Positions 25,941 through 62,108 of a DNA stretch of 64,000 bases are shown piece after piece (position 1 is the stretch's first letter; each line of letters starts with the position of its first letter). Position numbers and translations under genes: made by a program. The notes beneath the pieces were generated by a model, which worked only from the letters and a program-made list of their open reading frames with translations, was not told where the DNA came from and searched no databases. The stretch spans positions 16,612-80,611 of the forward strand of contig DF237372.1 of the NCBI GenBank assembly GCA_000708835.1, read 5' to 3'. The stretch comes from Klebsormidium nitens. Taxonomy: Eukaryota > Plantae > Klebsormidiophyceae.

Positions 25941-26117
25941 GGGAGCGGTTCTAAATTGGTAGGCACGAACAGGGGTATCTAGACGTGACCACTGATCGTG
26001 TGTAGTCCCCCCTTACTTCAGGGCTACAAATGGACGGACCAGATCAACGAGGATTGTGGGCAGATCACGCTTATTACGCCAGGAATATACCAGGTACCAG
26101 GGCTTTCTGAACCGAGG

Positions 26118-26530
26118 ATCAGGACGGACGGTTCTCTAACCGGGGGGGGAAAGCGAAAGCGGGTCGGTTTCGGCTCAGGGGGTACTTCCAAGGGGTTCAG
26201 GACCCCCTGTGGAACAGCAGGGCGCGGGAGATCAGGACGGACGGTTCTCTAACCCGGGGGGAAAGCGAAGCTGCAGGGCAAAGCGGGTCGGCTCTGGCGC
26301 AGGGGGTACTTTCAAGGGGTTCAGGACCCCCCTGGAACAGCAGGGCACGGGCGATCAGGACGGACGGTTTTCTGACGGGGGGGCAAGTGAAGCTGCAGGG
26401 CAAAGCGGGTCGGTTTCGGGTCAGAAGGTACATCCAAGGGGTTTAGGACCCCCCCGGAACAACAGGGCACAGGGGATCAGGACGGACAGATTTCTGACGC
26501 GGGGGAAAGCGAAGCTGCAAAGCAGAAGAA
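26118..26530. repeat. Degenerate tandem repeat, about 4 x 110-125 bp
   Basis: Unit begins gatcaggacggac and contains aagcgggtcgg and aaggggttcaggacccc; four starts visible. Confidence 0.9.
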
Positions 26531-42500: not shown

Positions 42501-45500
42501 ACCGGGCTTTCTGGGTTGAAAAGGTCCTTGAGGAGCGACTCGCTGCTGCCGCCGAGGGAGGGGTTCGAGGGGGAGGGGAGGCCGCTCGCACCTGGTGTGA
42601 TTGACGTGCGAAACGTCAGCCATAAGATCACATCAACAAGTGGGATTGGCAATGCAAACTGGATTGCCTGCCTGCCAATCAGAAGGAAGAAAAGGGCAAA
42701 GAAGGGCGACGCTGGTGACCTTTGAGCGGGTGCAATTGGCTCTGCCAACACTGGGTGTGCATAGGAAGCCAGACAAAATCTGGTTTGGAATCAGAAGTGA
42801 CAATACTTTTGCAAAGCGGAAGTGCCAAAGCCTGCCCCTACATTGATTACTGATGAGGGGAGCAGCCTGAACGGTCTAAACACGGGCTTCGTAGGTCTTT
42901 GAGGCTGTGCAATGTGGAGAAACCCAACACGGTGTCAATCTCCAAAAGCCGAGCTTGATCAGATTGTAACCCTGAATGATCCCTCGAGAAAAAGATGTAG
43001 AACGGCAGAACCAAAGAGGTATCAAGCGACCCAAAACAATTCCAAGTAAGACTGAATCCCCACGAGGACATCAATCAATGCGGATCCAACAAGCGGTGAT
43101 GGTGGCAAGCGGAAGCTTGGCCAAGCAGGGCAAGGACAAACCCGTTCAAGGACGAATCAATCTCCTTTCTTGACTTGAGATTCGTCATCTTTCCCTTCTT
43201 CAAACTCCACCCTCGCGACTTTGAAGACAGAGCTTCCAGAATGAAGAGCTTATAGCCCACCTAACGAGGACCGCCCCCCGACGAGCATACTCCCGCTGGA
43301 CGGCCCGGACCCCCCCGCCGAGTCCGCCTGCTGTCCCGCCGACCCGACCCTAATTCCGGACGCCCCCTTCTTCTCCGACCCCCCCGAACTGCTGCCCGCC
43401 CTATCCGTTCCACCCCCCCGGAGCAAATCGAGCGGAACGCTTTTCGTCGCGGCGCTTCCGCTCCCCTCCACGGGCCCTGGTCTCGTGACACGTGTCTCCT
43501 GAAAGCTGGGGTAGGAAAACGGCCGCATGGCGTCAGGGGATGGCGCCGCGAACTCGGAACCAAAGCCGCGGCGGCCCGACTCGCCCCCCACCCCACGAGA
43601 CCGCTCGCCGCCACCTGGCGCATGCGCGTCGGCTTTCGAGCCTCTGAACCCTGCGTCAAACGGAAAGCGCGCGTCGGTTGCGCGACCGGGGGGGTGCTCC
43701 CACCCCCCCGGCATGGTGGGCTTCGAGAGCGCCTCCGGGGAGGTTTGCAACGGGCTGTGACGTTGACCCTCCTCCGGACGCTCTTGGGGGGGGGCATCGT
43801 ACCTCCCCCGGGAAAAACTCGAGCAACTACCGTCCCCAGAAACTTGTCTTTCGTGGGCAGAGGGCACCGCCCTAGGCTCTCTGAAAACCCCCAGTTTCCA
43901 AGGCCCCCCCGTGCTAAACCCTTCCGGACGAAATCCTAACCCGCCGACACCATCTAACCTTGCTCGCATTGACTTTTGACCCAGCCCCTGTAAACCAAAG
44001 CCCCCGCTCAGTGCCGGCCTCATGCCCTCGGAATTTGCACCCCCAGTGCTCCTTCCCCCGGCTTGGAGGCTCCCCGAACTTAACGAGGGTTTGTTTAACC
44101 CCTTCGCCGCTTCCTGCGGGCTCGTGGAAGAACCCCCCCGAGACGAATCCGGAGACCGCCTGCCGAAAAAGCCCTGTCCGGGGGGGAACCCAAACTGCAT
44201 TGGAGGGGCCCCCCACTTGCCAAAGTCCTCGAACGGCCGTGGGTGGGGGGGTGGGCGGGTGCCAAACCGGTCTGGATTACGTGACCGGGTTAGCGACGGG
44301 TTGCCCTGGAGGGCTGCCACGAACGGATTTATCCGGTTGGGGTTAGGGTCAGGATTAGTGGAGGGTTGAGGCTTTGAAAGGAAGGGGTTAGGAAAGGCCG
44401 GAAAACCCTCTCCTTTTGGGCTCCAGTTGAACGGGTCAGGGCCCTCGTGGGCTCCGCTTGGATGCGAAGGGGGAAGCTTAAAGGGTCCCTGCCGCACAGT
44501 GGGGGACCTAGGTACTCGGAATGTTTCTTTAGGGGTCTCGCTCCGAGGCCCTGTGGAAGCTTGCGGTCCAGGAAACGGACGGCTCTGAAACGGCCCCCCT
44601 CCTCCAAACCCAGGGTGAAAGACGGGCCGCTCTAACCCCTCAAACCCTAACCCTTGACCCCCCGGAAACCTCTGCTCCTCCAAAGGGGGTCCCCCGAAGC
44701 CCCTCCTGAAGCCCCCCGCTTCCGTCGGGCTGCTCTGGCTAAAGGGCGGCGGACCAAGTCGGAAAGGGTTGCCAGGGGGCCGTTGCGGAAGCCCGCTTAA
44801 CCCGTTTTCTAAACCTGGGGGGCGATCAACCTCACTCCTCCTGCGGTCTTCTCGTCTCCGTGCATTGCTGACGTCATCAGGCTGCCTCCTCCCCTCGTCC
44901 TCGTCGTTCAAGGGACGAGAGTCGGGCCCTGGCCCAGAGGGGCCCAGGATCCGTCCTACGGTAGGGGGTTCCGCACATGGGTTTGGCGGTGGCCCCCCTC
45001 GACCGCCTAACCCCAATCGAACGGCCCAAGGAGAGAGCGCCGGGGCGGAGGTTCGGGGCGGGGTTTCCATCAACGCGTGACCACCTGAGAAGCAAGAGTT
45101 TGAAGGTTAGTCCCACGGTGGAGCACAGTTGCAGAAGGGTCTTTTTCCTGTAAAGTTTCGTCGCCTGTGAGCGCAGAATCGGAATACCGGCCACGTCGAT
45201 ACAGGTGGCAGAGATTACTGATTGGTGCTCAGTTGTACGACCTTCTGCGATTCGTCAATGGAATCGAGAGACCCCCCAGATTTGAGTGTGGTCTGACACA
45301 TTGCAACCGCTTTGATGTGTGCTGTACAAAAGCGATGAGAGGCGTTTGAAGAAGCAGCTCTCGATACTTTCGAACTCCGAGGCAGTGTCTAGTTCAGGAG
45401 GTTTGTCATGCAATACAGTCAGACAGCATGCTTCCTGACAAGATTTGCCACCGCCAATTCCTCTGCTTGTTGGGCAGGCCGACCTCGGATGATTGCAATG

Positions 45501-47495
45501 ACAGTCACAGCTTTGAGAGCAGTCCAAGCGAGCTTGGCAACGTAAGCGCGCGTCAAAGACGAACGAGTGCATGTCACGGATGGCCAAGGATCTCAAGCAC
45601 GCACTGCCAAAACTCAGTGCTCCATCTGACCAAGACTGAGAGCAGATGCGCGCCAATCTCCAGCCAATCTTGACACCAACAGAAGACACGTCAAGGTCAA
45701 ACGCAGCAAAGCAGACACTCTCACCCGCTTCCACGACATCCTGAACCTCCGTTTCGGGGGCTTGGTTGTCTCCCGGAATGACCAAGGGGGGGGGCATCCT
45801 GAACGACGGCAGAAAACTGAGCCCCCCATTGGGCCTCAACCCTTTCACCCCCCGCCTTCGCGTCCCTGCTGATCCCTCTCCTTCCCCGGCGGAAGATCTC
45901 CTCCCAGATCCCCCGTTCGAAGCCGCGGTGCCCCCCTCTGATGGGGGATTCATTTGCCCCCCTGCTTCTGCTCTACTGCCTGGCTCCACCCCCCCTCCAG
46001 CCAAATCGTCATCTCCACCATGACCAGCCGGCCTCCCCTCAGCACTCCCCTCGACAGCATTCGTTTTCCCCACCCCCCCCTCCTTCCCAGGAAATCTCTG
46101 ACCCTGGTTTCCGGCATCTTTTTGCCCCTGGCCGATACCCAATCGTTCAACCCAAGAACCCATTCCTCTCCTCGCGCCCCCGCGGCTGCCCCCGCTGCCT
46201 TCGAAACTCTTTCCCTCCCCCTCCGGCACATCCGTAGACTTTCCCCCCAAACCGTTCGGCTGTCCTTCTGTTCGCCACCCCCCCGCATCCTTACACAAAG
46301 AGCCGAAACTGCCAAACCCCCTCGGCTGGTGAGCCCTATCCTCGTGCATTCCGTCTCGGCCCTCTTCATTTTCACCCGCATCGCCCGCCCTGCCTCTCGT
46401 TTCCCCTCCCTCCACTTGAAACCCGTTGCCCCGCCTTGCGTTGAACCCATTCTCGACAACCCTTTGCTCGCGCCTGCCCCCCCCTCCGTCGACCGTCTCA
46501 GGCGTCCCTGCTTCCGCAAACTGCTTCAGGGGGGCACCAACGCTAGGGCTCGGCAGCCCCACCTCCGTGCTCGGCCGGCTGCCCGTCCGACCCCCCCCCC
46601 CGGAGGCGCCCGTCCCGTTGCTCGCCTTAAAAGCATGGCTCCCGCTCTCCGACTTGCTCATCCACTTCCGAACCGCCGCGGCTTCCTGCTGCTCCCGAAG
46701 CGCTTCCGCCAGACCGTACCGCCGGGCGGCGAGGCTGGGCCCGTAACCCCCGCCCCTGCTCCTCTGCTGCGACGCCGCCGGTTTCGGGTTGGGGTTAGGA
46801 TTAGGGTTAGGATTACCGTCCGCGGTCGACGGCCCTTCCACCGACCGGCTCGCAGTGTCGGTGCTTGTCCGCACCCCCCCTAGAAAAACGGGGCCCCCGG
46901 TCGAAGGGCCGCTCCCCCGTGCCTGATTCGTGGCGTTTGGCAGCGGCGGGGGCGGCGTTGGGAGGGGCCCGGACGACGGCGTCTCGGGCTCGTCATTTGC
47001 TTCTTCCTCTTCCTTCCGCTGACGGGGGCTCTCAGCCCCCTCGTGCGCGCTTCCCTCGTCTTCCGGCCGCTCGTCAGGCAACTGCCTCGCACCTGGAAAC
47101 TGCGGGACCCCCCCCCTCGGACCGAACTCCCTCAAGGCCCCAAATAGCGGCACCCCAGGGGGGACCCTCTCCAGGTTCGCCGCACCCCCTCGAGGTGTCT
47201 CCTGCGCATTCGCCAACCGCGTCCCACTCGAGGGGGTCTCAGCACCCCCTGCCGGCACCCCCCCGCCGCCTGGCCCTGCCGGCAACCCCCGCAATCGCTG
47301 CACCCAGACGCTCAATCCGAGAAGCTTTTCGCCACCCCCTCGCGCACGATCCGTCGGAACGGGGGGCGCGCCGGGATGCGGTTGGCCGACCTCTGAGTTG
47401 GCGCTAATGGTATCGAGCCCCCCCATTACAACGGACGCAGGCTGACCAGGGACGCGCCCCTCCCTCTGCGCCCCGTAGGCTGGGTAGTGAGCCAT
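39568..47495 (-). CDS. Very large G/P/R/S/E-rich, probably disordered hypothetical protein (~1825 aa)
   Basis: Phase-consistent exons 45725-47495 (ATG at 47495), 43261-45084, 42206-42591, 41319-41798, 39568-40584 (TGA); 5478 nt. Long stop-free GC-rich frames; no globular domain recognised. Confidence 0.7.
41800..41895. repeat. Tandem ~22-bp repeat at a 3' splice site
   Basis: Four to five copies of acagaaaggcaggttaagcttt abutting the acceptor at 41799. Confidence 0.85.
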
Positions 47496-50400
47496 TCTCC
47501 CCTCTTTGGGGGGGTGGCTTTTTACCAGGCCATGGCGTTGCGAGTGCAAACCCTTAGGGCAGGCCCCGCAGACAAAGCACAGGCGATGCGCGTCTGTGCT
47601 TTGAAAAGTCTCTCGGTCTCAAACACTGCTTTTCGACAAATATCGTGCGTTGTTACTCCGTTGGAGAGCTCCAACATTCGGGCTCTGCTACGAACAACCA
47701 CAATGACAGAGTCGGGCTTTGGTCCGTTCCTTTATAGTGCCCCAACTTCGACTCAAAATACCTGGTCCTAGATTCAAGTTGCATTCAATCTCCTGACGTC
47801 CTCATTTCGATTTTCCGTTTGTTGACAATCACAACAATGGTATGGACTCAGCCACAGTGCTCCCCCACTTCTCACACATCGTGGTGCCCGACATGCTGAG
47901 GAACAGTTTGCCAAACCTGCAACAAGGAAGGTAACCGAAGATGAACCAGAGAAACTGCGTTCTGCAAGACCAGGTGCTTGTGCAGTGTCTCCATGCTTTC
48001 AACCCCTGCTCTCCACCTGCAAGCAAGCATCTTGAAGAAGGCTGGTGGTTTTGCAGAACCTCGACAGTCTGCAATTGAGATGCCTGCATGCTGGCCGGTT
48101 TGAGGGAGTTGATAAACGATAGGGTTTCCGAGTTTATGGTAACATGCCTTAGCTCACGAGAGCCTGCATTCTGCAGAATGTGGAATCGCACCATTGTCAA
48201 AGAGGAACAAAGAGGAGAAGGAATTGCTGAAGCAGAGTCCGAGCAGTCATCGGCCGTGTCTGATAGCAGGGCCTGCCAGATCTTTAGCAAGTGCAAAATG
48301 TATGGTGGCAAAGAATCTGCAAGTGTAGCACCTTATATTTGGCTGTATGGTCCAAAATGGACGATAATAAAAGAAAGAAAAGAAAAAGAAAGGGGATCAC
48401 GAGAAGCGGGACATGTAGAAGAGAGGACCGAGAGTAAGAGACTATTTCAAAGATGACAGTGATGATATGAAGAAGAACACACACAGAGAGCAGAGGTCGA
48501 ACAGGGTTGGCGAATGGGAAGGCTTGTAGAGCTCAAACACTTCAACTCTCAGCAACTCCTTTTTTGACTCACACAATGAGAAGTTGACGAAAAGGCTTCA
48601 ACGGCGGCTGACAAAAAGCTTACACAATCTGCCGAACCAGATTATTCCGAGCTCTGCAATCTCGCACAGCGGAATGCCAGGAGGACATGGCAATCTGGGA
48701 ACGCCCCGGATCCAGCACGCGTGAACGACAACGGCCTGTCAAATGGTACGACTTACCCCTGCGCATTTTCCATTCTGCAGCAGAATGCCCACATCGCCCT
48801 GCCTCAGACTGTATCGGTCTTCGCTGGCCCTAAAGGTGATTGTTGTTTGGCGTCGTCTCTCCATTTTGATGCAACGCTTCCAGGGAGACATTTGCTGTAG
48901 CTGTCAGTGTCAGACTCTGGCCCGTGGCTGTTGAGTCTGTCACTGTCAGGGCGTCTGGCGCATGGTGTGTGCCCAGGAACAGGACCACCAACTGCTTGCA
49001 AGCTCATGCTGAGCTCATGAGCCTGGCATTCCGATGGCGTTCCGTTCGCTGCCTGTTCAGAGCGGAACCCGATTGGTCGATGATCATCGGAGGGTAGACC
49101 CTACGGACCCACAACCTTCAAATTTACACGGGCGCGATCGCCGCGGTCGCGCGAAAATTCACTCTATAACTTTCCGGCGCACCCGGCAGACTGGCGGTTC
49201 GTCAACACTAGCGAAATTTGACGTACTCGATACTCGGAGTCGAAGCCTACCGCACGCGATTTTGCCCCGGGTATAGTACTCACCGGTAGTCAGCTCAGAC
49301 AACTTGCCTTACCCTACTAGTACTGTACTGACTCCCGAGCGCTGTTCATGAGTCACCCGCCTGCCCGGAGCTTCAAGTTTCAATGAGCGCAGTGCGGCGG
49401 CCGCCGCGGCGCTGCCAACTGTACGTTGTCACTGTAGACTCCGGCAGTGCTGCCCGGCCGCCGGGGCAGAAGAGCTTCAATTTGGCATGCCGCATGGCTT
49501 TTACACGGCCTCCAAATCCTGACTTCTGTGACCTGTCTACTCTTGTCGGAATACAGCATCATCCAATGATTGATGAGGTAATACCGGCGATGCATTCTGC
49601 CCGGCTGTCGTAATATATAACAGTGGCACTTAGTATGGAGAAACGTGCCAGCTGTCGATCATCATAGTGGAGCTATTCATCAAATTAAACGTCATCAAAG
49701 TATGACTCTAGAGGCTTCAGAGGATATGATATCTTTTGCATCTGCATCCGAGTACAACATCTGAAACTGTGCATCTCCTGTGACATGTGAACGGCCGCAT
49801 AAGTGCCCCATATAAAGCGGGCGTACAGGGTATACAGGGCGGCCTGCTCTTACTAGCATTGATTGAGCTGTGCTGGCATGCTGTTGGTCACCCAAGGATT
49901 GAAGGATCACCCAGCAGCAATCGTTTGCACATGAGCTGGTTCAGTTGGTGCATCATTCAAGCCTAATGAGCCCCAAATCATGAGCGCGAGGCGAACGGCA
50001 GCCGCCTGGCACATTGAAAGCCTAACTGTGAGCTCAATCGGAGCTTATAGCAAGCTGACAGGTGCCCGGGAAATTCTGTGACAGGCTTTGTATCATCGAG
50101 TCGCTTGGCTTAGAATCGAACAGGTGAACGTATCAACCAGCTGACACCGAAGGACTGTTATCAAGATCTAGATGTGGTTGTTCTTTGAAGCAGATTCGGC
50201 CTTAAACCCCGAGAAGACTCAAACCTGAGACTGCTTTAGACGTACAGCAGCCTGAACACAGCACTAGAGGGCAGAGAAAACGTGCCACCTAAGCAAGTTC
50301 GAAGGCCTTAATTCTATGGTCGCTTAGTTTTTCGTAGTTTGTATCTGGTTACAGCTTCCTGTCGTGTACGAATCGGCAGCGCTGGTGCGGCGTCTTCGGC

Positions 50401-51225: not shown

Positions 51226-51318
51226 NNNNNNNNNNNNNNNNNNNNNNNNNNNNNNNNNNNNNNNNNNNNNNNNNNNNNNNNNNNNNNNNNNNNNNNNNNN
51301 NNNNNNNNNNNNNNNNNN
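51226..51318. other. Assembly gap (N run)
   Basis: Run of n bases. Confidence 1.
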
Positions 51319-54300
51319 TTTCTGCTACGGAGTTAGCAAGTCTTGCTGGGCAACCGCAAGGCGTATGCAAAGAGTCAAGTTTCTGCGACCAGCCTCTTCG
51401 TGAGTGGGAACACAGCAGACAGAACTTGGAAGCATCAAGCAACACTTTTACAGAGAGGCGCTCTCGCGTGTCTTCCTTGTCTGTTGGCTGTAAAGCTTGC
51501 CCATGGTTTCCGCACATGTGTAAGCAGACTGACATCCGTAAGTGTATTCAGTCCAACGGCGTGCTAACTAGCCCCGCCGTCACAAGAAGCGAGAATGATA
51601 TTAGATAATCCTTTAGACAGATTCCTTTTCCGTCTAACAATATACTTCCGGTTCGAAACGCTGAACGTGAGCGGGGCGAAGTTTCAAGCCTATATGCATG
51701 TCGAGGGAGTGCTCGCGATCTACGTTTCGGACAATATTTTTGCCAGGTTGGCTCACTATTAAAGTTGCTCGTCACTCTTACTTCGTAGACAAGGAACGGA
51801 CTGAAACGTTCGATCTGCAAACATTTCTTCACGAAGCAGATAGAAAGATGCTTGGATGTGCATCAGAAAGTTTGAGAGTCCTGATAAGGTCACTTACTGC
51901 CGTATTGGCATTCGCTTGATCTTTCGTTTCCATCTCGTCCTCGGCCGCTCTCTTCCGCTTTCCCCCCTTCTTTTTCTTCCGGAACTGGGTGAAGGACTTT
52001 GCTTTAATGGTGCGCTCCTCTTGTCTCAGGTCAGCGTTCACTCGAATCAGTACCTAGATAAGAAGTTCAGAGGTCTCAGTCCAACCCGGGGTCAGAAAGA
52101 GCGAGCAGGAATAGGTCGACCGAAATGTTGGTCGTCTCCAACTTTGCTAAACACGAAGTACGCTCACAAAAGGGTTCCGTTCTTCACCAGTACTAGCAAA
52201 GAAAGAGGCCGTGAGGCGGCCAGAAGATGGACCGAGCATGTTGAAAGACTGTAGTTGCAGATTGGAGAAGTGCTCGAGCTGGGTTCCTCCTAGATTTGAC
52301 AAGCTTCGCTTTATAACATTCTTTGCTAATGTATATGGAAGCCAGATAGAGACATCACCTCCTTGACCTGCGCAAGAAGACAACCAGCTTTTTGCCAACC
52401 CCGACCAACACACTTTTTTGAGCTCGAGCAAGTGGAGCAAGCTTTGTAAAGAACCTGGAGGACTCGTACATGAGTGGACCAGCCTTATAGGGCATCGAAC
52501 GCTCACCTCTTTCAGAAGTCCCTTGGCATTTGTCCAAGGTTCTACCCTGCCAATCTTATCCAACACTCCATGAAACTCGCGTCTCAACGACGCAATTTCG
52601 CCATGCTCTTTTACTCCCTTCTCATACCCGTCCTCTACGTCGGAATCCACCCCCACCGTAAACGCTCCTGGGGCCTGGCTAGAGGCATACGTTTCTTGCT
52701 GCTCCATCTCAGCGGACTTAACTTCCATCAGTACTTCTTCCCTTAAGTTATCTAGATTGAGGTTCCACTTTTCAAGGCCACCTAGCATCCTGCACGTAAG
52801 ACCGAGGGTGAGCACCTTTGGGGCCCACATCAAGAAGGTCCTCTTCTCATATGAAACATTAGCACGTGAAGATGGGGCCTTCTCCAATGCACTTTTATAG
52901 TCCAGAGAAATAAACGGGTCAAAGTGATTGAAGACACGTGTCATCAAGAAACCCCCAAGGCCCCATCATTCTACGTGTTGTTTTGCACCACCTCATGTGC
53001 TGTTTCGAAGGTATGCTTGATTGTCAACACTAATTAAGCTGATTGGAGGACAGGAAAAGAGGCTTCCAAAATATCTGCTTCAATCATCTGATGCAGTCTT
53101 AACAATCTGCAACCTTAGGTACCGTCAAAGTTCCTTTTTGACAGTCGAAGCCCAAAGCTGAAAGGCCTGACGATCTGACCTTGCCGCAGCCCGGATGTGT
53201 TTGCACAGAAGCCCACTTGGATCCTCGCAGTCACAGAATCCGCCTCGTAACACGACGGTGAACATCTTCTCGAGCCGCTCGGGGGCATTTCCAGCAGACT
53301 GCTCTTGGCGTTCAGCCAGCTTCAGGATCGCCGCCTTAGAGGCGACCATTGCATGACCGGACTGATAATCTAGAATGTTGATTGCACCCGCTGTTTCAGA
53401 GAGTTTAAGAGCCTGCAAAGAGAGAAGCTTGGGCTTTCCCAACGGTAGAACGACTCTTGCTGTCAATAAAACGAAAGCGCTTCTGATTCAAAGTGGGCCG
53501 CATAATGCACTGGACATGATCATAGTCAATAGGTGACATCTTTTGGATCCGCTCATCTCAATATGACACCCAATCTTCAACGGAGTGCACTAAGCTTTGC
53601 TTCACGATCACATGCACCAGAATTTCGGAGTCGAGTCTGGAGCCAGATTGAACTCTCCTTTGAACTAAAGGACTTTAAGCGACTGTCTAACTTGGCAGCA
53701 CGTAGATGATTGGCTTCAGTTGGCAGGACGCGAGCCACCGAAAAGAGAGCTTACCTTTCTTTCCCTGTCCAAGACAGTCTCGTACAGCTTCCAGTTCGCT
53801 TTGCGACCACTGAGCATGTGCTTTCGCCTGCTGACATAGAAGTTTTGCACTTCGATTGTGAGAACCTTCAAAACACGCTCTAGTCTCTTGTTATTTTTAC
53901 CTTCCAAGAACCGCCACTTCAGCGTTTTGAAAAAGCGCTCGACAAGGTTGTTTGTCTCTATTCTAAACCAGCACCTGACCTTTTTAGTACGAAAGGCGTT
54001 GCACCAAATCTTATAAAGCGGTCTCTTCTGGTTGCTTCCTATCCAATCCCTCTTTAAGTGCACTGTAACCTGCTCTAAGTCTTCAGAATTAAGATACGCG
54101 ACTAGGAGGTCATAAGCTTTCTGCCACCGTTCTGCGTCGGGAGCTAATTTCATCTGCCTGATCATCATGAGGATTGCTATTCTCTGCTGTTCAGATACTT
54201 TATTCACCGATCGCTTTAACCATCGCTCCCAAGCCTGCATAACATGAAAGAAGCAGATACGAATGTCTACACTATCTCCGAAAACTTTCCTAATGGCGTT

Positions 54301-55405
54301 TATTTCGACGTCGCTCATATCAATGCTAAATGCTCGGGGCTTAAACGTTTCTGGGCATGCCTGCTGAATTGCTCGAAAGAAGACTTCTAGAGGTTCCTCT
54401 CTTTCGGTCGAACTGAGCATAAAGGCTATTGGGACCGCATGCCCCTGCTCATCTGGCAACACTATCGCCGATAGCGGCCACCTGTACTGGTTTGTCTGAC
54501 CGGTTGCGTCTAAGCAGAACACGTCAGCAAGTCGTTTACTATGCAAATCTTTTAAAACCTGCCGCTGCCACGGAATTTGCAGGACAGCAATGAAGGGGCT
54601 ACATTGCGCGCTATGCTCACACTTCTGCTTTCTTACTTTCTCCTTCGCCCTTTGCTTCGCAAATCTCTTGTTCCCTTGACTCGTAAACTCGTTTTCAGAA
54701 GGACCGTCGTGACATTGACAATGGAACTCCTGGTAGCTTAAAACATCAAGCTCTTCTTCGGAGACCGGAACCTCTAGATTCGGTCCTTCTGGGCTGTGAC
54801 GACAATCAGCCGTAGCTTTACAGTGCTGTTTGAGGAACTCGTAAGTGGCTGCTTGATCATCCGGATTGAGATAGTTCCCGCGCCGAATCGACTGAAGCAT
54901 GTTCTTCACATCTTTTTCTTGTGGAGACCACCGTGGATCTGATTTCTCCGTTTCGCCACCTTGCATCAAATCAGAGATTTCGGTATGTTGAATGAAGTCT
55001 GGAGATGCCTGTATTCGTGTCAACCTCAGCAATATGCATTTGTTCCATCCCTTCGCAACAGGCTGTGACGGATGTCGGACACAAGCGTTTTCCAATTTCC
55101 CAGGTTCGGAGATTCTTTCCAACTTCAGATTCCCCAACTATTTCAGCCAGTTGGGGCACCCATTCAGCCAGCTCAATCTGAAGAGCACTTCGTCTTGCAA
55201 CAAGTTTGTTTGGGCAATCTTGCAGACGCTTAAAAGCTTGGACATGAAACTCGATGGCCCCAAGACTGAATCAACGTCACTTGCCGTACCTTGAGATGGG
55301 CCCGGCGGGGGTAGTATGCCTTGTGGCAGTGTCGACGGTGTGTTGATGTAGTCAACAATTTCCCCGGGAGAGCACCCTAGGTCTAGCAACATTTTGATCC
55401 AGACA

Positions 55406-55655
55406 CGCAAGCTTTTATCCAGGCCTCTCGGTAGGAGTGGGCTTCTCCGCACGCAGGTAGATGCGTCCCAAAGACCCTGACAGTGATAGCACCTCCGCTC
55501 CTGAGAGAAAAGGATCAAAAGTTAAGAAAGAGAGACACAAGCTTTTGTCCAGGCCTCGGTAGGAGTGGGCTTCTCCGCACGCAGGTAGGTGCGTCCCAAA
55601 GACCCTGACAGTGATAGCACGTCCGTTCCTGAGAGAAAAGGATAAGATGTTCAGG
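55406..55655. repeat. Near-identical ~128-130 bp tandem duplication of a transposase acceptor site and exon start
   Basis: gctttt(a/g)tccaggcc...ctgagagaaaaggat present at about 55411-55515 and 55541-55643. Confidence 0.95.
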
Positions 55656-56983
55656 AGAGAAAGATGATTAAGTTACTCAATGTTCGTAGATACTTTAACC
55701 GGCTTTTCAATGCTGAGAGCGACCGGGCCTATACTTTCAGCCGTTGACTAGAGTAGCGGAGAGGAGCGAAAGTGCTCTTTGAACCTTGTCGAGCGATTGA
55801 AGCAAGTCGACTCACAAAACGGTCGTTCTGCTCAGGTGCAAATTGTCTACTATGTTGAAAGCTATGTAGAAGCGGTAACTTCAATGACGAGCGGGAATCC
55901 TGTTAGCTCTGACACATTCGAGTCGGCACCAGGGAAGTGGAAGCAAGTGTCGAGGCGGCTGCACATGACGCAGAGGGACTGACGGATTACTCTGAGTTCG
56001 TTCCTTAGAGAGGTAAGAATCTGAAAAGAAGCTCAAGCAGTTGTGTCCGACCTCAAGTCCCCAGCCATACGTACGTACGGCCTACTCTCAGCTTACAGAC
56101 AACCCACCTGGCTGATGTCACCGCTGAAGTTGCTGTAAAACGGTACTTGCAATTCAGTTTGTTGGTAAATTTAACCTCGAGACCTTTCCGCGCCTGGCGG
56201 CGACCCCGTTCCTCGTCCTCCTTGGCTTGACGAAGGAAAACATCCTGAGCGGTCTCACCCCCAACAGCTTTGGATGTCCCAGCCACAACCTTTACTGCCC
56301 CCCGCTTTGGTTGATTGCGCAACGACCTCGCCTTTGACTTACCATGGCACATGCACTTAAATTCGCGGAATCTGAAAGTCGCGTTTGACCGGATGCACAC
56401 ACTACTTTTCACAACCCAAGTCGTTGGATCTTGGGCAATGAATGAGGGAAGGCCCGTGTCAATAAGCTTGCTTGGCTGATCCCGATGCGACAGCAGATCG
56501 ATGCCGCCACTCGTCTCTTGCTTAGTCTTCCATGCCTCGAACTCTTCTTCCGAAGCGAAGGTCAGAACCTGACAAATAATGGAGACACTTTTCAGATCGA
56601 TGCTCATCCATCAATCCGAGTGTTCCAGTCCTGACCGCACACCGTTCGCTCACCTTCAATCCAGAGAAATGGATGGCTGTGTATAGTGCACTCCTTCGAA
56701 AAGAGTGTTATTGGCAGTAGGTTCCTGTTTGACTGATATGTCATTACCGGATCCAATCAAAGATGCTTGACTGGCCTTCCGCATCCAATTTCAGTGGAAG
56801 TGACTTCTTTACAGTGCCAAAGATGCAAGTTTCACTCAAAAGGCAACGGAGAAGCGAACGCCTGAGACCGAAACCGCCCGCTACCGGTAAGCTTCGACAA
56901 AAGTACAGGATCAATAATCGGCATGACAGCAAATGCTATCATGAGGGTCAATAATGGGTGTCCAAAGAACGCTTGAAACTTAC

Positions 56984-59900
56984 TTCGACTGGCATTTCGA
57001 CCGTCCCGGCCCTTGAAGATTTCACAACGGGCGCGCCTTCGGCGTCATCCTTCATGACCGGCACGGTTTCCGCTTCTGGCACCGCCGGTGTGACCACCCC
57101 CGGAGCAAGCGGGACCTGAGCGACCCCAAACTCTACTTCTTCCGCTGCCGTCTGGTCCGGAGCTCCTTGCTTTTGAGCACGTTTCTTTTCGGCCCGGGCC
57201 TTGTTGTTTTTCTCAGAACGGAGGTAACAAGTCTTACAGTTTTTCTTCTTTCCGAATTCCGCTTCCGCATTGAAAGTTTTACAGCCCGCGCACCACCGTT
57301 CTCCTGATGGTACTCCCTGCGGGGGCGGTGCAGTACCACCCTTCCTTTCTCGCACTTCCCCAGACTTCCCCGACTGATCACACTCGATGCAGGCTTTTGA
57401 CAGGCGACCCCCTTTTAGCATTGAGAAAAACGACAGGGGCTGTAGATGGCTTTTCCGGGAACACTTGAGATATGCTTCGAATTCGACGGTTTCTCCTGGT
57501 CGCACCGAAGTTGTTTCCAAGGAAGCGTCTAAGCTTGAGATAGGGAGAGAGTGGGACTGTAAACGGAGCTCGACTTTCCGACCTCGCACTTCCGGCAAAT
57601 CGAATCGCGTCGAAACTCTCCCTACGAAAGCTGAGACTGTCTCGGCTTTGAGCAGAGGAAGCTGGTAAATGATCTCCCGTCTAGAGATGTTTTGGACGAA
57701 GACGGAAGTAAAAGGAGGGGCCGACTCTCTCTTTTCCGGTTCCGGAACGGGTTCCGCTTCTCCAGTCTCCAGTTTAAGGAGAGCGTTGAAGCTGTTTTGA
57801 AGCGAGACTGGCTCTGACCCGCTCTTCTCTCTCGTCGGGCTCATGGTTGAAGACCCGCCATCACGACGCGGGCCAACTCTTGTCCACGACGAGAACACCC
57901 TTGAACGCTCCTGCAAAATCGTTTCAAGACGACTTCAGACCTCAATGAAGTAATCTTCATCGAAGGTTGCTCTGAACATGCGAGTGTCTTGACTTCGATA
58001 GCAAAGATCAGAACGAAGCTAAAAATGTAAGCAGCAAGAACCGGCACCTAGATGCTTCGAGGCAAGCTCGATCTTCCGAATTGCATCAGATAAGCGTTCA
58101 GGTCAAGCAATAACTAGCTTTGACAAATTTCCGGGCAAGCGATCCTCACAGCCATGAACCACCGTACCTTGTAAGCCTGGCGAGGTGATGCCCGAATAGG
58201 CGACTGTGCCACCTTGATTGATGGGCTCGAAGGAGCAGACGGGTTGGCCTGGTCAAATGCGCGGCGCGGGGTCTGCATAATATAATGCAGATAATTAAAT
58301 CGTGAGTACACCTTTTCTGTTTGGGCAGCGCTTTCAATGTAAGGAACTCTGGGTCTCCCAACCGGTAACTCGAAGAGCAGCTTGACATTTACTGTTAGTG
58401 ACGACTGCATAGCATGTCGGAAGAGTGAACTCGAGAGTAAGAAGAAGCCGTTGTGTTTCAAGCGCCAATCTAGAAGCCCACCTTTGCGAATCGTCAAGTT
58501 TGATCAAGTTATAAGGGTCTGCATGATGGGCAGGCTCTATGTGAGCGAGCACAAAATGAAGAAACGGGACAATCGATGTTAGGGAACTTGCAAGTCGTGT
58601 CTCTTGCTCCAGACATTGAATTCTCACCCTTGTTGCTTGGCTTGACGGTGCCCGCGGAGGCTTTGATTTGAGGGGCGTGGTCATACCATCAGCCGGACCC
58701 ACGTCCATGGAGACCCCACTGCCGAAGTAGGCCTGTAAAAGGAGAGTACAAACTTCTTTTGGTCTTAACATCAGATCAGAAGGCCTTGTTCAGAGTCTGG
58801 AAACTCACAATCTTTAACGGTCAGGCTTTGAAGTTTAAAAATTCAGTGGGCGCTGTTGAATCTGTTAGTTCTTGTAGTGACTCAATGGTGAAAACCGATT
58901 AGGATTTGGGAGAATCTGTAAAACCTCAACAAAGCTTTTCATTTGAACACAATGAAAGAAACCCCGGGACGGCCGACGCAGTCCTTATGCTGACCGCACC
59001 TGTTTGACCTAGCGTCGCACACTCCAAGATATAGGGTTTACCAACCGAGGAGGACTGTTGCAGTATTATAATCTGAGGGACGTTTCAGAACCAGGACCCT
59101 TCTGCATGACAATGACTTTCAAAAACACATGCCAGCCGTGCTTGAGCCAGGTTGCAGTATTCAAATAATCTGGAGGAATTTTGAAGCCTCCTACCAGAGT
59201 TTGTCATGTGTGAGCTCTCAACAAGCCTCAAGGTAATTTCCCATGAATATCAGATTGCGAGCTCATGCTTACCTGTTGAACTGTGGGCAAAGAAGGACCT
59301 CCAGTGGTTACACTTGGGAGCAGCGCCGCATCATGGGTAACTTCTGAGAACTCCACAGCCATATGTTCATACAAGGTCCCGGCAGGGCTCTCTCCACCTC
59401 TCAGCTCATGAACCCTGCTCCTGTTTTCGAACCCGCATAAGCGCTCTCAACGCTCCGGTCAAAGCACAGCTGCCGGCAGCCCCCGTGAAACTCATGACGT
59501 ATCCCTGTGTGCCGTTCTCCACGAGCGTGGAGCCCAAGCTGTCAGTAACGTAGGCTTCGCTTGCGCAGCTTGAGCCCCCACTTTCGGGGCCGTGCGCGCT
59601 GCCACATTTACACTTGGACCTAGTGCTGAGAACAAATGTATGCCGGCAGTGGACAAGAAGGAAGTGTCGAAAACCCTCATTCGACTGCTCTCCTGTTCCT
59701 CCCCCATTTGTTATGACGTCTCCAAACAGATCAGTGAAGGAGCTAGTAAGACCCCAGGTGGCAAGGACAGCCCTGATAGGTTCAGGCAAGCTTGTGACAT
59801 CGACGCTCACCACCACTTTTGAAAACGACTCCCTGATTGGCAGACCGGTTGCTCTGAGGGCAATGTTAACTGGAAGATAGCCGTCCGGAAACTCCTGGCC

Positions 59901-60173
59901 ATAAGATGTTGTTGGGGTGTACTGAGCCTGTTGCACATGCTTCCACTTGTGAATCGCAAGTTGCCAGAGTTGTGAGTAGTGCTCAGGCGTTGGCAGCTGA
60001 CCAACACTTCGGCCTGCGAGATGCTTGAAGGCTTCAACAAGGTATAATGCTGCCACAGTACAAGCACCACTTCCACCAAGAGTGCACTGATCGTGAGGCA
60101 AAAACGCTGTTGAAACTGTGAACTCCCCATTCCTGTCCTTGAGCTGGAAAGGATCGAATATCAGTGACTCCAT
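56984..60173 (-). CDS. MULE-adjacent spliced gene: papain-like Cys-His-Asp domain + ubiquitin-like segment + two zinc fingers; one 1-nt frameshift
   Basis: Phase-0 exons 59273-60173 (frameshift near 59425), 58628-58732, 58168-58404, 56984-57910, about 720 aa, ending at a GTAAGT donor. Motifs: HDQCTLGGSGACTVAAL, FLLVHCRHTFVL, YVTDSLGSTLVENGTQGYVMSF, LYEHMAVEF; Ubl-like 57470-57690; CSRKSH...CIEC; CAGC-x-CKTC. Confidence 0.7.
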
Positions 60174-60496
60174 TTCCTCTAGTCACAGCCAAGCTACTAC
60201 AGCAGCTGGCAGATGTTGCGCAATGTTGTAGTGCTGATCAGCAACTTGATTGACCAACTTCCCAGCTCCCGGACCAGCTGCACCTTAGCTAAGCACGTGA
60301 GCTGAGTTGCAACACCTTGTACCAACTGGGAAGCTGAAGAATAGTCAGATCGGTCACTGCAAATCTTCACTGGGTAGCTGCTCTTCACTGACTGGTCAGC
60401 AAGCATTGCAAAGCACTGACATTTGCAATCTTGCAAACAGAATCCTGACAGACATGAAGCCATCGGATCGGAGCTGGATCGACAGTCCTGTCTCAT

Positions 60497-60640: not shown

Positions 60641-60803
60641 TTGTACACGTGCCCTGCATACGAGCTTGACGCCTATTATAAGTCAGCACCACCTATATAC
60701 ATCGGTAGAGCATGCATTCTGTGCTCTCCTGCATTCGGCATTCTGTGCTGTCCAGATCTGCAAATAGAGGAAAGGGGACTTGGCGCAAGGGCCTGAAAAC
60801 AGC

Positions 60804-62108
60804 ATGGATCTTATGGATCAGGTGGACAGGCTGGTTATGGATCTGGTCATGGAAGACGTGACAACCACCATTGACAGGATGAAAACCAATCGTGTAAATG
60901 ACGCAGATCTAACCCGTTCCTGTATCATCCCCTTCTTCATGCTGTTTTTCATGACGCTTCTTCTCATCATCAAACAGAGAGAGGCCTCCCGCAAGCGTAA
61001 ACGGGAATGGTGGAAGTTCCCTAGGCAGAAGGTAACGTGGGAAGTTGTTCAGAATACTGTCTGGATGATCACTCCAGAAACGCGGGATGCGAAGTGGAAA
61101 GAGACCTACAGAATGTCCTGGCCACTTTTCTGCTTCATAGCTGAACAGGTTAAGCCTTTCATTCAGAAGGACGACACAAAATTTAGGAAAGCCATAGAGC
61201 CAGAAAGAGCCACAGCAATGGTCATTTATCGTCTAGCTCATGGACACGCTCCCAAGAGGATTGCAGAGGAGTACAACGTAGGGGCCAGCACAGACACTGA
61301 CTATACGACTCTTGTCACAAGGGCCCTTGCTGTGGACCTATACCCTGAATTCATCAGAATCCCAAACTCTGAAGAAGCAGCCGCCATAATGGCTGGTTTT
61401 GAAGCTCTGACTGGACTGCCGTGCATGATTGGCGCCATCGATGGAAGCCACCGTATCAAGCTCTGGAGAAAACCACCGGCACGGTTTGGCCCCGCTGACT
61501 ATTGGTGCCGCCATGACTTCTTCAGCCTACTCCTCCAAGCAGTCTGCGATCATCGCAAGATCTTCTTGGATGTCTCAGTCAATGCTCCTGGAGGTACGCA
61601 TGATGCAGAGCACTTTCGGGACAGCAGGCTCTTCCGGAAACTCAAGAGTGGGGAACTCTTAACCCAGCCAGCAGAGATTGTCAATGGGAGGGTGATCCGC
61701 CCGTATCTTGCGGGCGACTCGGCGTACCCGTTGACCATGTTCTGCTTAAAAGCATTCACTGCTAGGGGAACGGGGACTGCTGACCAGAATGCTTTTGACA
61801 AAGCTTTTAGAGCTGGGAGGGTGATGATTGAAAACGCGTTCGGGATTCTGAAAGGCCGTTGGCGGATTTTGAAAAACCTCAACGTGACCCAGCGGTATTG
61901 CCCTCAAGTGATAGTGGCCTGTGTCGTGCTTCATAACATCTGCCAATTGCGGGAGACAGACTTGGCTGGGGCGGTTCCCTATGGGAGGCACTACGCAAAC
62001 AGCCGGACAGGGCAACGGCACCTGAGCAGCGAGAATGCAATGCTCAGGGGGGGAAAGGCTAATCGAGAAGCGTTGTTTGCTCAATGGATAGCGAACAATA
62101 ATAGATAG
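60804..62108 (+). mobile_element. PIF/Harbinger DDE transposase (HARBI1/ALP1-like), intact intronless ORF, 434 aa
   Basis: YRMSWPLF, HTH region YRLAHG...IAEEYNVGAST, catalytic MIGAIDGSH, AGDSAYPL, IENAFGILKGRWRIL, and ACVVLHNIC. Confidence 0.95.

Follow-up and report, generated by a model that had tools for sequence, protein, structure and literature searches.

A predicted papain-fold cysteine-protease-like domain forms the N-terminal part of a spliced Mutator transposase gene in the streptophyte alga Klebsormidium nitens

We analysed a 64,000-nucleotide stretch of Klebsormidium nitens contig DF237372.1 (hereafter the window, within which all positions are numbered), where an earlier note had described a Mutator-linked cassette made of a papain-like protease, a ubiquitin-like (Ubl) segment and two zinc fingers, just upstream of a Mutator transposase. 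The cassette is no separate unit but the N-terminal part of one minus-strand, multi-exon Mutator transposase gene of about 8.5 kb: its exon 4 is spliced on to the transposase exons, and position 56984, formerly taken as the gene end, is an exon boundary followed by intron 4. We read the locus as the front end of a single spliced gene of a Mutator-like element (MULE) family of Klebsormidium-type streptophyte algae, whose N-terminal domain, predicted to share the fold of plant DUC deubiquitinases, VTDs and bacterial YopT, is most likely, though by no means surely, an isopeptidase that acts on ubiquitin or a related modifier and serves the transposase. The encoded protein runs from a predicted papain-fold domain with Cys-His-Asp order through a linker, a Ubl-like beta-grasp domain, zinc finger(s) with a basic helix and a presumed DNA-binding region to the MULE DDE core and a SWIM finger.

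The gene structure was deduced from four public runs belonging to three studies, whose assemblies are of transcriptome size and whose RNA nature is guessed only (RNA-type runs hereafter). The letters of the locus were identical in all four runs, with no differing letter and no indel. Six minus-strand GT..AG joints were recovered in RNA-type contigs, at 58733-59272, 58273-58627, 57911-58167, 56569-56983, 55501-56107 (weak) and 54960-55289, and the RNA-type depth was zero in the bins wholly contained in introns 1, 2 and 4 (58878-59076, 58281-58479 and 56689-56887, respectively). A single RNA-type contig of 2639 nucleotides spans exon 1 to exon 5. Four exons spliced in phase had been proposed from the letters; the contigs show the three GT-AG introns, and together with in-silico splicing they join exons 1 to 4 in phase. 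The in-silico spliced mRNA has a frame of 629 amino acids that extends from the end of the protease domain across exons 2-5 and reaches the beginning of exon 6. As the stop at 56948 lies inside intron 4, the gene continues into the exon at 56108-56568, the helix-turn-helix-like exon, the MULE core and the SWIM exon.

All the parts of the gene lie on the minus strand. Exon 1 begins with an untranslated part at 60174-60405 (RNA-type contigs X1 and X2 reach 60312 and X3 reaches 60405), followed by an open reading frame (ORF) of 255 amino acids at 59406-60173, with its ATG at 60173 and its stop at 59406, which encodes most of the cysteine-protease-like domain of predicted DUC/VTD/YopT fold. A frame-break stretch with one extra base, seen in the RNA-type contigs too, lies at 59421-59445. 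Read in the +1 frame, the last part of exon 1 (59273-59425) supplies the final conserved helix and strand of the domain (LYEHMAVEFSEV...) and continues as ...VHELRGGESPAGTLYEHMAVEFSEV... as far as the GT donor at 59272. Exons 2 (58628-58732) and 3 (58168-58272), each bounded by RNA-type joints, are in-phase linkers. Exon 4 (56984-57910) carries a conserved NSF..L..LE motif, the Ubl-like domain, the zinc fingers and the basic helix. Exon 5 (56108-56568) is conserved, displays a WRKY/FAR1-like pattern (...FKCMCHGKS...) without Pfam match and is presumed to bind DNA, and exon 6 (55290-55500) encodes a conserved helix-turn-helix-like part (...WIKMLLDLGCSPGEIVDYINTP...). Between these two exons the joint 55501-56107 is weakly supported. 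The stretch 55474-56136 is also covered unspliced by RNA-type contigs, at a depth above that of the joint, so either this intron is often retained or the real exon 5/6 junction lies elsewhere. The MULE DDE core exon follows at 53716-54959 (PF10551, E 5.6e-15, 56 bits against a cut-off of 27.6), preceded by intron 54960-55289, and then the SWIM zinc-finger exon of the same transposase at 53125-53466, where the PF04434 match is near threshold (19.1 bits against a cut-off of 19.6, E 9.5e-4) and the CxC...CxH pattern is visible. More C-terminal transposase exons extend down to about 51985.

The Gln/Cys, His and Asp residues formerly recognised in papain-like order are conserved in homologues, and the predicted fold is papain-like as well. 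In exon 1 they correspond to Gln29 (60089-60087), Cys38 (60062-60060), His178 (59642-59640) and Asp211 (59543-59541), located respectively in Asp28-Gln29, GGSGACTVAAL, HCRHTFVL and VTDSLG. Asp28-Gln29 and Cys38 are kept in all five homologues covering them, Asp211 in all six (27-55% identity) and His178 in four of the five aligned sequences covering the position, as well as in locus L005 by direct reading. Cys188, Cys190 and Cys203, located between the His and Asp strands (59565-59612, minus strand), are invariant across the family. A fourth Cys, in ...GSCAL... (about 59460) just past the Asp strand, is kept in every member covering the position. A structural metal site may be made up by these cysteines.

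In the AlphaFold2 model Cys38 heads a long helix, a helical lobe is formed, His178 opens a strand and Asp211 closes the next strand but one. Using this model as the query of an all-against-all structural search over 48,161 PDB representatives, the best matches were the zebrafish Helitron VTD (8add_A, score 13.0 over 178 residues), the cytomegalovirus M48 protease (2j7q_C, 12.2 over 177), another VTD entry (8adb_A, 11.2 over 167) and AvrPphB (1ukf_A, 8.0 over 160), after which the next best score dropped to 6.0. Foldseek against the PDB returned no significant match, the VTD chain 8adc_B having a probability of 0.87. In the ESM Atlas the nearest shapes were two Streptophyta clusters, one of 571 amino acids (template modelling score, TM, of 0.65 by query, 206 residues aligned) and one of 763 amino acids (TM 0.66, 214 residues aligned) in which 79% of the members contain PF10358 NT-C2; every other row had a TM of 0.33 or less. 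Since the model was made without a template and from an alignment free of plant sequences, the ESM Atlas result is an independent pointer to At3g11760-type proteins. The likeness to the C-terminal domain of NT-C2 proteins of the At3g11760/At5g04860 type, to which the earlier note had pointed, is thus borne out by shape (TM 0.65-0.66 versus 0.33 or less). That plant domain, then called uncharacterised, now constitutes the DUC deubiquitinase family (10.64898/2025.12.04.692294). The language-model feature neighbours were the Herpes_teg_N, YopT and ShET2 clusters. As modelled, the fold is papain-like with the Cys-His-Asp order and belongs to the YopT/VTD/DUC structural cluster.

Searches by sequence were run with the same parts. 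A Pfam scan of all pieces at E up to 1 gave no match for the protease, Ubl/zinc-finger and DNA-binding parts. Within Pfam the protease domain had no match to PF04843 Herpes_teg_N, PF03543, PF10358 or Peptidase_C48. The PDB searched by sequence (single sequence and profile) yielded chance matches only, and no DUC protein was detected in the exhaustive phmmer or word-indexed profile searches, the likeness to DUCs obtained here being one of shape.

The family itself is tiny. The exhaustive phmmer search of 1.84 billion representatives gave seven matches at E 0.001 or better, among which a repetitive protein of 1220 amino acids (P0006, 28 residues matched) was left out of the family. One match is the K. 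nitens protein GAQ92124.1 (KFL_009260030), named only 'SWIM-type domain-containing'; the others are unnamed JGI or Logan proteins. Word-indexed protein searches, with a profile headed by a 344-amino-acid sequence and with the protease part of an 866-amino-acid ORF from locus L004, returned family members only, and pattern scans of metagenome contigs gave no confirmed relative.

Downstream transposase modules accompany the domain in five of six loci, and the MULE core is reached in three of them; the Mutator linkage proposed earlier is therefore upheld by co-occurrence. The window, L001 and L003 (KFL_009260030) present the protease, Ubl/zinc-finger, DNA-binding, helix-turn-helix-like and MULE parts in one order and on one strand. 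L005 has the same module order as the window, its contig ending at the helix-turn-helix-like part, before the MULE core. In L004, which is 26-27% identical, the protease-like, Ubl-like, zinc-finger, DNA-binding and helix-turn-helix-like parts are contained in the uninterrupted 866-amino-acid ORF, providing direct evidence that the modules form one polypeptide, and the protease-like domain retains its Gln, Cys, His and Asp.

Two further observations concern the relatives. The public model of L003 (10001-19048), GAQ92124.1, joins the protease head to the SWIM tail and omits the protease His/Asp part and the MULE core; it evidently skips them to avoid a frameshift and a stop, and the annotation hides both domains. 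A solo protease-like domain, with Gln, Cys, His and Asp intact, is found in P0008 (L002 10001-11035) and P0004 (L006 270-1241), which are 95% identical and have no transposase parts within 10 kb. Their coding parts are about 2.4% diverged versus 6% over the whole aligned 1.66 kb, and the ratio of nonsynonymous to synonymous substitution rates, calculated from only 19-23 differences, is 0.5-0.67. This solo version may be a domesticated copy.

The Ubl-like segment of exon 4 (57458-57718) exhibits the beta-beta-alpha-beta-beta topology of a beta-grasp domain and matches ubiquitin or Ubl structures. It runs on as ...VEFEAYLKCSRKSH... and the C-terminal Gly-Gly required for conjugation is absent; it is an integral domain and no modifier. 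A complex prediction between the protease-like domain and its own Ubl-like domain scored 0.00, with a poorly folded partner, and counts neither for nor against a contact between them. The motif preceding the Ubl-like domain, NSF(N/D/E)xL(L/M)xLE(T/V)G(E/D) (57770-57800, minus strand), is kept in the window, L001 and L003. The zinc-finger region (57227-57391) contains three CxxC pairs and one His, all invariant. The last two pairs (57227-57292) form a C4 finger predicted fairly confidently (predicted local distance difference test, pLDDT, 74-89) and followed by the basic helix (57170-57235), so that the earlier call of two zinc fingers is supported in part.

The window copy is transcribed and spliced, yet unable to make the full-length protein, because of a one-nucleotide frameshift in the protease part and a 128-bp tandem duplication with two extra bases at exon 6. 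In the protease part the ...LYEHMAVEF... frame is recovered by a +1 shift. As the RNA-type contigs hold the same letters, the frameshift is neither an assembly error nor an effect of editing: it is real, as formerly proposed, and only its placement changes. Alignment with relatives favours a site near 59432-59444 for the extra base over the A4 run (59424-59427) in which the earlier note had put it; any one-base loss within about 59421-59445 yields the same downstream frame. The relatives P0001, P0005 and P0008 read straight through the region without break. The duplication (55427-55682) takes in the 3' splice site along with the first part of exon 6, and the copy used by the exon contains the two extra bases (about 55426-55427) that produce the second frame break.

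Two ways in which the window copy could have been rescued were considered and discarded. A programmed frameshift is inconsistent with the shifts of the window and L003, which occur at different sites and in opposite directions, and with the intact relatives reading through. Use of the upstream acceptor in the 128-bp duplication leads to an isoform that hits a stop, neither acceptor giving an open frame. The other copies carry their own lesions: in L003 a frameshift located elsewhere than that of the window and in the opposite direction, and a stop after the zinc finger; in L001 a stop in exon 4 and a Leu replacing the His; in L005 a frameshift and a stop. Several diverged copies, two of them in K. 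nitens (window and L003), have decayed independently.

Our reading of the N-terminal domain as an isopeptidase is drawn by analogy with the DUC domain and with the VTD, OTU and Ulp1 domains of other elements. The putative enzyme, travelling with the transposase, could shield the transposase or the transposition complex from ubiquitin-dependent removal, or it could strip ubiquitin-type marks off chromatin or repair factors at the element. Its role would be the same as that proposed for Ulp1 in KI-MULEs and for the OTU and VTD domains in Helitrons, and the neighbouring Ubl-like domain might regulate or tether it.

A number of observations weigh against this reading. The residue following the His is Thr in the window, L003 and P0008, Ser in L005 and Ile in L004, so that no aromatic gatekeeper is present. 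The AlphaFold2 model, built from a 9-sequence alignment, is of low confidence (pLDDT 56.7, predicted TM 0.59), Foldseek gave no PDB match at E 0.001 or better, and Pfam, PDB, phmmer and profile searches yielded no link by sequence to DUC, VTD or YopT. In L002 the domain stands by itself, transposase parts being absent from the surrounding 10 kb. Every Klebsormidium-type copy examined (window, L001, L003 and L005) is damaged, each differently, and the runs that define the exons are only guessed to be RNA. Around 49-61 kb no convincing terminal inverted repeats or target-site duplication were found, and the element ends are undefined. Past the last transposase exon to be recognised, an assembly gap (a run of N at about 51230-51330) falls within the stretch where the element's other end would be expected and makes that end harder to find.

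Because the gatekeeper is missing, the main rival reading is a YopT-like protease that possibly processes itself. The domain would then be a protease of the YopT/AvrPphB kind and no deubiquitinase, cutting either the transposase precursor in cis, for its release or activation, or a host protein. The Cys-His-Asp order without aromatic gatekeeper is indeed that of YopT-type enzymes, unlike DUCs; the YopT and ShET2 clusters are among the feature neighbours; the long modular protein has the domain at its very N-terminus; and AvrPphB is known to process itself. We nevertheless judge this explanation unlikely: VTDs, though also devoid of gatekeeper, are still deubiquitinases, a ubiquitin-like domain adjoins the protease domain, and no conserved cleavage motif was identified.

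The comparison of the copies bears on whether the domain has been of use to the element. Their DNA similarity is restricted to exons. Synonymous sites are saturated, with a proportion of synonymous differences (pS) of 0.77-0.86, and the proportion of nonsynonymous differences (pN) is 0.28-0.34 in the protease part and exon 4, the DNA-binding exon standing at 0.28 and the MULE core at 0.15. Saturated pS against restrained pN indicates that the protease-like domain was long kept by purifying selection along with the transposase, before the copies died. It could instead be a piece of a host DUC-like gene captured by the MULE in the manner of a Pack-MULE, a passenger of no use to the element, given that MULEs pick up host gene fragments, that the nearest shapes are streptophyte host DUC proteins and that the near copies are all damaged. 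We consider such a capture improbable. A useless fragment is expected to decay, whereas the domain is found at the same place, in frame and with a conserved start codon despite a pS of about 0.8, it has the same pN as the DNA-binding part (about 0.3), and it persists with all four key residues, within one ORF, in a relative that is 26-27% identical.

The same four residues speak to the idea of a catalytically dead module, a pseudo-enzyme retained for ubiquitin binding or scaffolding. The absence of the gatekeeper, the Leu found at the His position in one copy and the common occurrence of inactive VTD copies in insects would fit it. We find it quite improbable, as members at 27-55% identity, the intact L004 and P0008 among them, retain Gln, Cys, His and Asp, and as the Leu variant sits in a copy with a premature stop. 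Finally, that the locus is no transposon at all and belongs to a domesticated, transposase-derived host gene family with an acquired protease head (compare FAR1/FHY3 and MUSTANG) is very improbable: terminal inverted repeats and target-site duplications were not found and the gene is expressed and intron-rich, but several diverged paralogues, two of them in K. nitens, with frameshifts and stops of their own form the pattern of a decaying repeat, and constraint is strongest on the DDE core (pN 0.15).

We thus retain, as the most likely reading, a MULE-family gene with an N-terminal isopeptidase-like head. Proteases of the ubiquitin/SUMO type carried by transposons are already known, MULEs having Ulp1 and Helitrons having OTU and VTD; to our knowledge, the function of such proteases for the element has never been demonstrated. 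Full-text literature searches did not find a DUC-shaped Cys-His-Asp domain built into a Mutator transposase of a streptophyte alga. The present domain would add a third fold family to the transposon-carried ubiquitin/SUMO-type proteases, here within a Mutator transposase, in a host belonging to the algal group that includes the land-plant ancestors. Having no Pfam model, the family lies outside current annotation. It would also offer a natural experiment on the gatekeeper rule, namely whether a DUC-like site without an aromatic residue can cut ubiquitin.

A more tentative proposal, which we regard as possible and rather doubtful, is that the plant DUC class and the Mutator-borne domain are direct relatives, either through domestication, in a streptophyte ancestor, of a MULE protease head that was fused to a C2 domain or through capture of the ancestral DUC catalytic domain by a charophyte MULE, which retained it as a functional component of its transposase. 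If this were true, the history of DUCs would include a transposon chapter, like that of VTDs, and the algal family would be a missing link in the YopT/VTD/DUC cluster. A transposon-borne relative in a charophyte would provide a concrete hypothesis on the origin of DUCs, testable by phylogeny and biochemistry.

Other features were observed in the window. Directly upstream of the 5' end of the Mutator gene and on the opposite strand, an intact 442-amino-acid ORF at 60780-62108 (plus strand) exhibits the DDE_Tnp_4 / Plant_tran domains of a PIF/Harbinger-type transposase; the two elements are neighbours or nested. The segment 49092-49219 has a 74% DNA match with L003 20686-20819, past the annotated end of the K. 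nitens paralogue, and could represent either one more exon or subterminal DNA common to both elements. Unrelated to the protease, a G+C-rich array of tandem repeats with a unit of about 122 bp and a low-complexity Gly/Pro/Arg-rich ORF of 764 amino acids within a block of 60-63% G+C were found at 26091-26508 and 45255-47549.

Among the known systems, the VTDs (PF04843; PDB 8ADD, 8ADB and 2J7Q) are carried by Helitron/Helentron transposons and by herpesvirus tegument proteins (Erven et al. 2022, PMC9741609). They lack the gatekeeper and are still deubiquitinases, inactive copies being common in insects (PMC9741609). Their reported occurrence covers animals, fungi, protists and bacteria, and that text nowhere uses the words 'plant', 'algae' or 'Mutator' (PMC9741609). 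The algal domain resembles them in being encoded within the main protein of a DNA transposon, in having no gatekeeper and in its narrow, patchy distribution. It differs by the order of its residues, VTDs carrying an invariant Asp-x-His on one strand (Cys-Asp-His) whereas the algal His is located 33 residues before the Asp with no D-x-H, and by the host element, a Mutator here and a rolling-circle Helitron there.

The Ulp1 (C48) proteases of KI-MULEs and plant MULEs, for which a rice example is available (PMC12903978), are likewise accessory cysteine proteases for a ubiquitin-like modifier on Mutator-like elements, the algal specificity being putative. They belong to another fold family with the His-Asp-Cys order, and the algal domain has no Peptidase_C48 match. 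YopT and AvrPphB (Peptidase C58, PDB 1UKF) are bacterial effectors that are not ubiquitin-directed; the structural match to them is weaker than to VTD or DUC, and the algal domain has no PF03543 match.

The DUCs of Arabidopsis, AtDUC1 (At2g25460), AtDUC2 (At3g11760) and AtDUC3 (At5g04860), are active, K63-selective deubiquitinases (Lachmayer et al., bioRxiv 10.64898/2025.12.04.692294, December 2025). They possess a Cys-His-Asp triad with a Phe gatekeeper after the His; an aromatic residue at this position is a hallmark of DUCs and of most deubiquitinases, and the F442A mutation strongly lowers AtDUC1 activity (10.64898/2025.12.04.692294). The N-terminal NT-C2 lipid-binding domain of DUCs is lacking in some algal members, and the authors detected no sequence similarity to other families and concluded that neither where DUCs came from nor how they relate to VTD and YopT can be established (10.64898/2025.12.04.692294). 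The Klebsormidium-type protein differs by the absence of a C2 domain, by the position of the protease, N-terminal on a transposase as opposed to C-terminal on a membrane-bound host protein, by the absence of an aromatic gatekeeper after the His, and by an insert of about 18 residues, including three invariant Cys, that widens the His-to-Asp spacing between the two strands (33 versus 15). It shares with DUCs the predicted papain fold, the Cys-His-Asp order and the ranking of structural neighbours, VTD and then YopT/AvrPphB; its nearest predicted structures are streptophyte NT-C2 proteins, and both belong to the streptophyte lineage.

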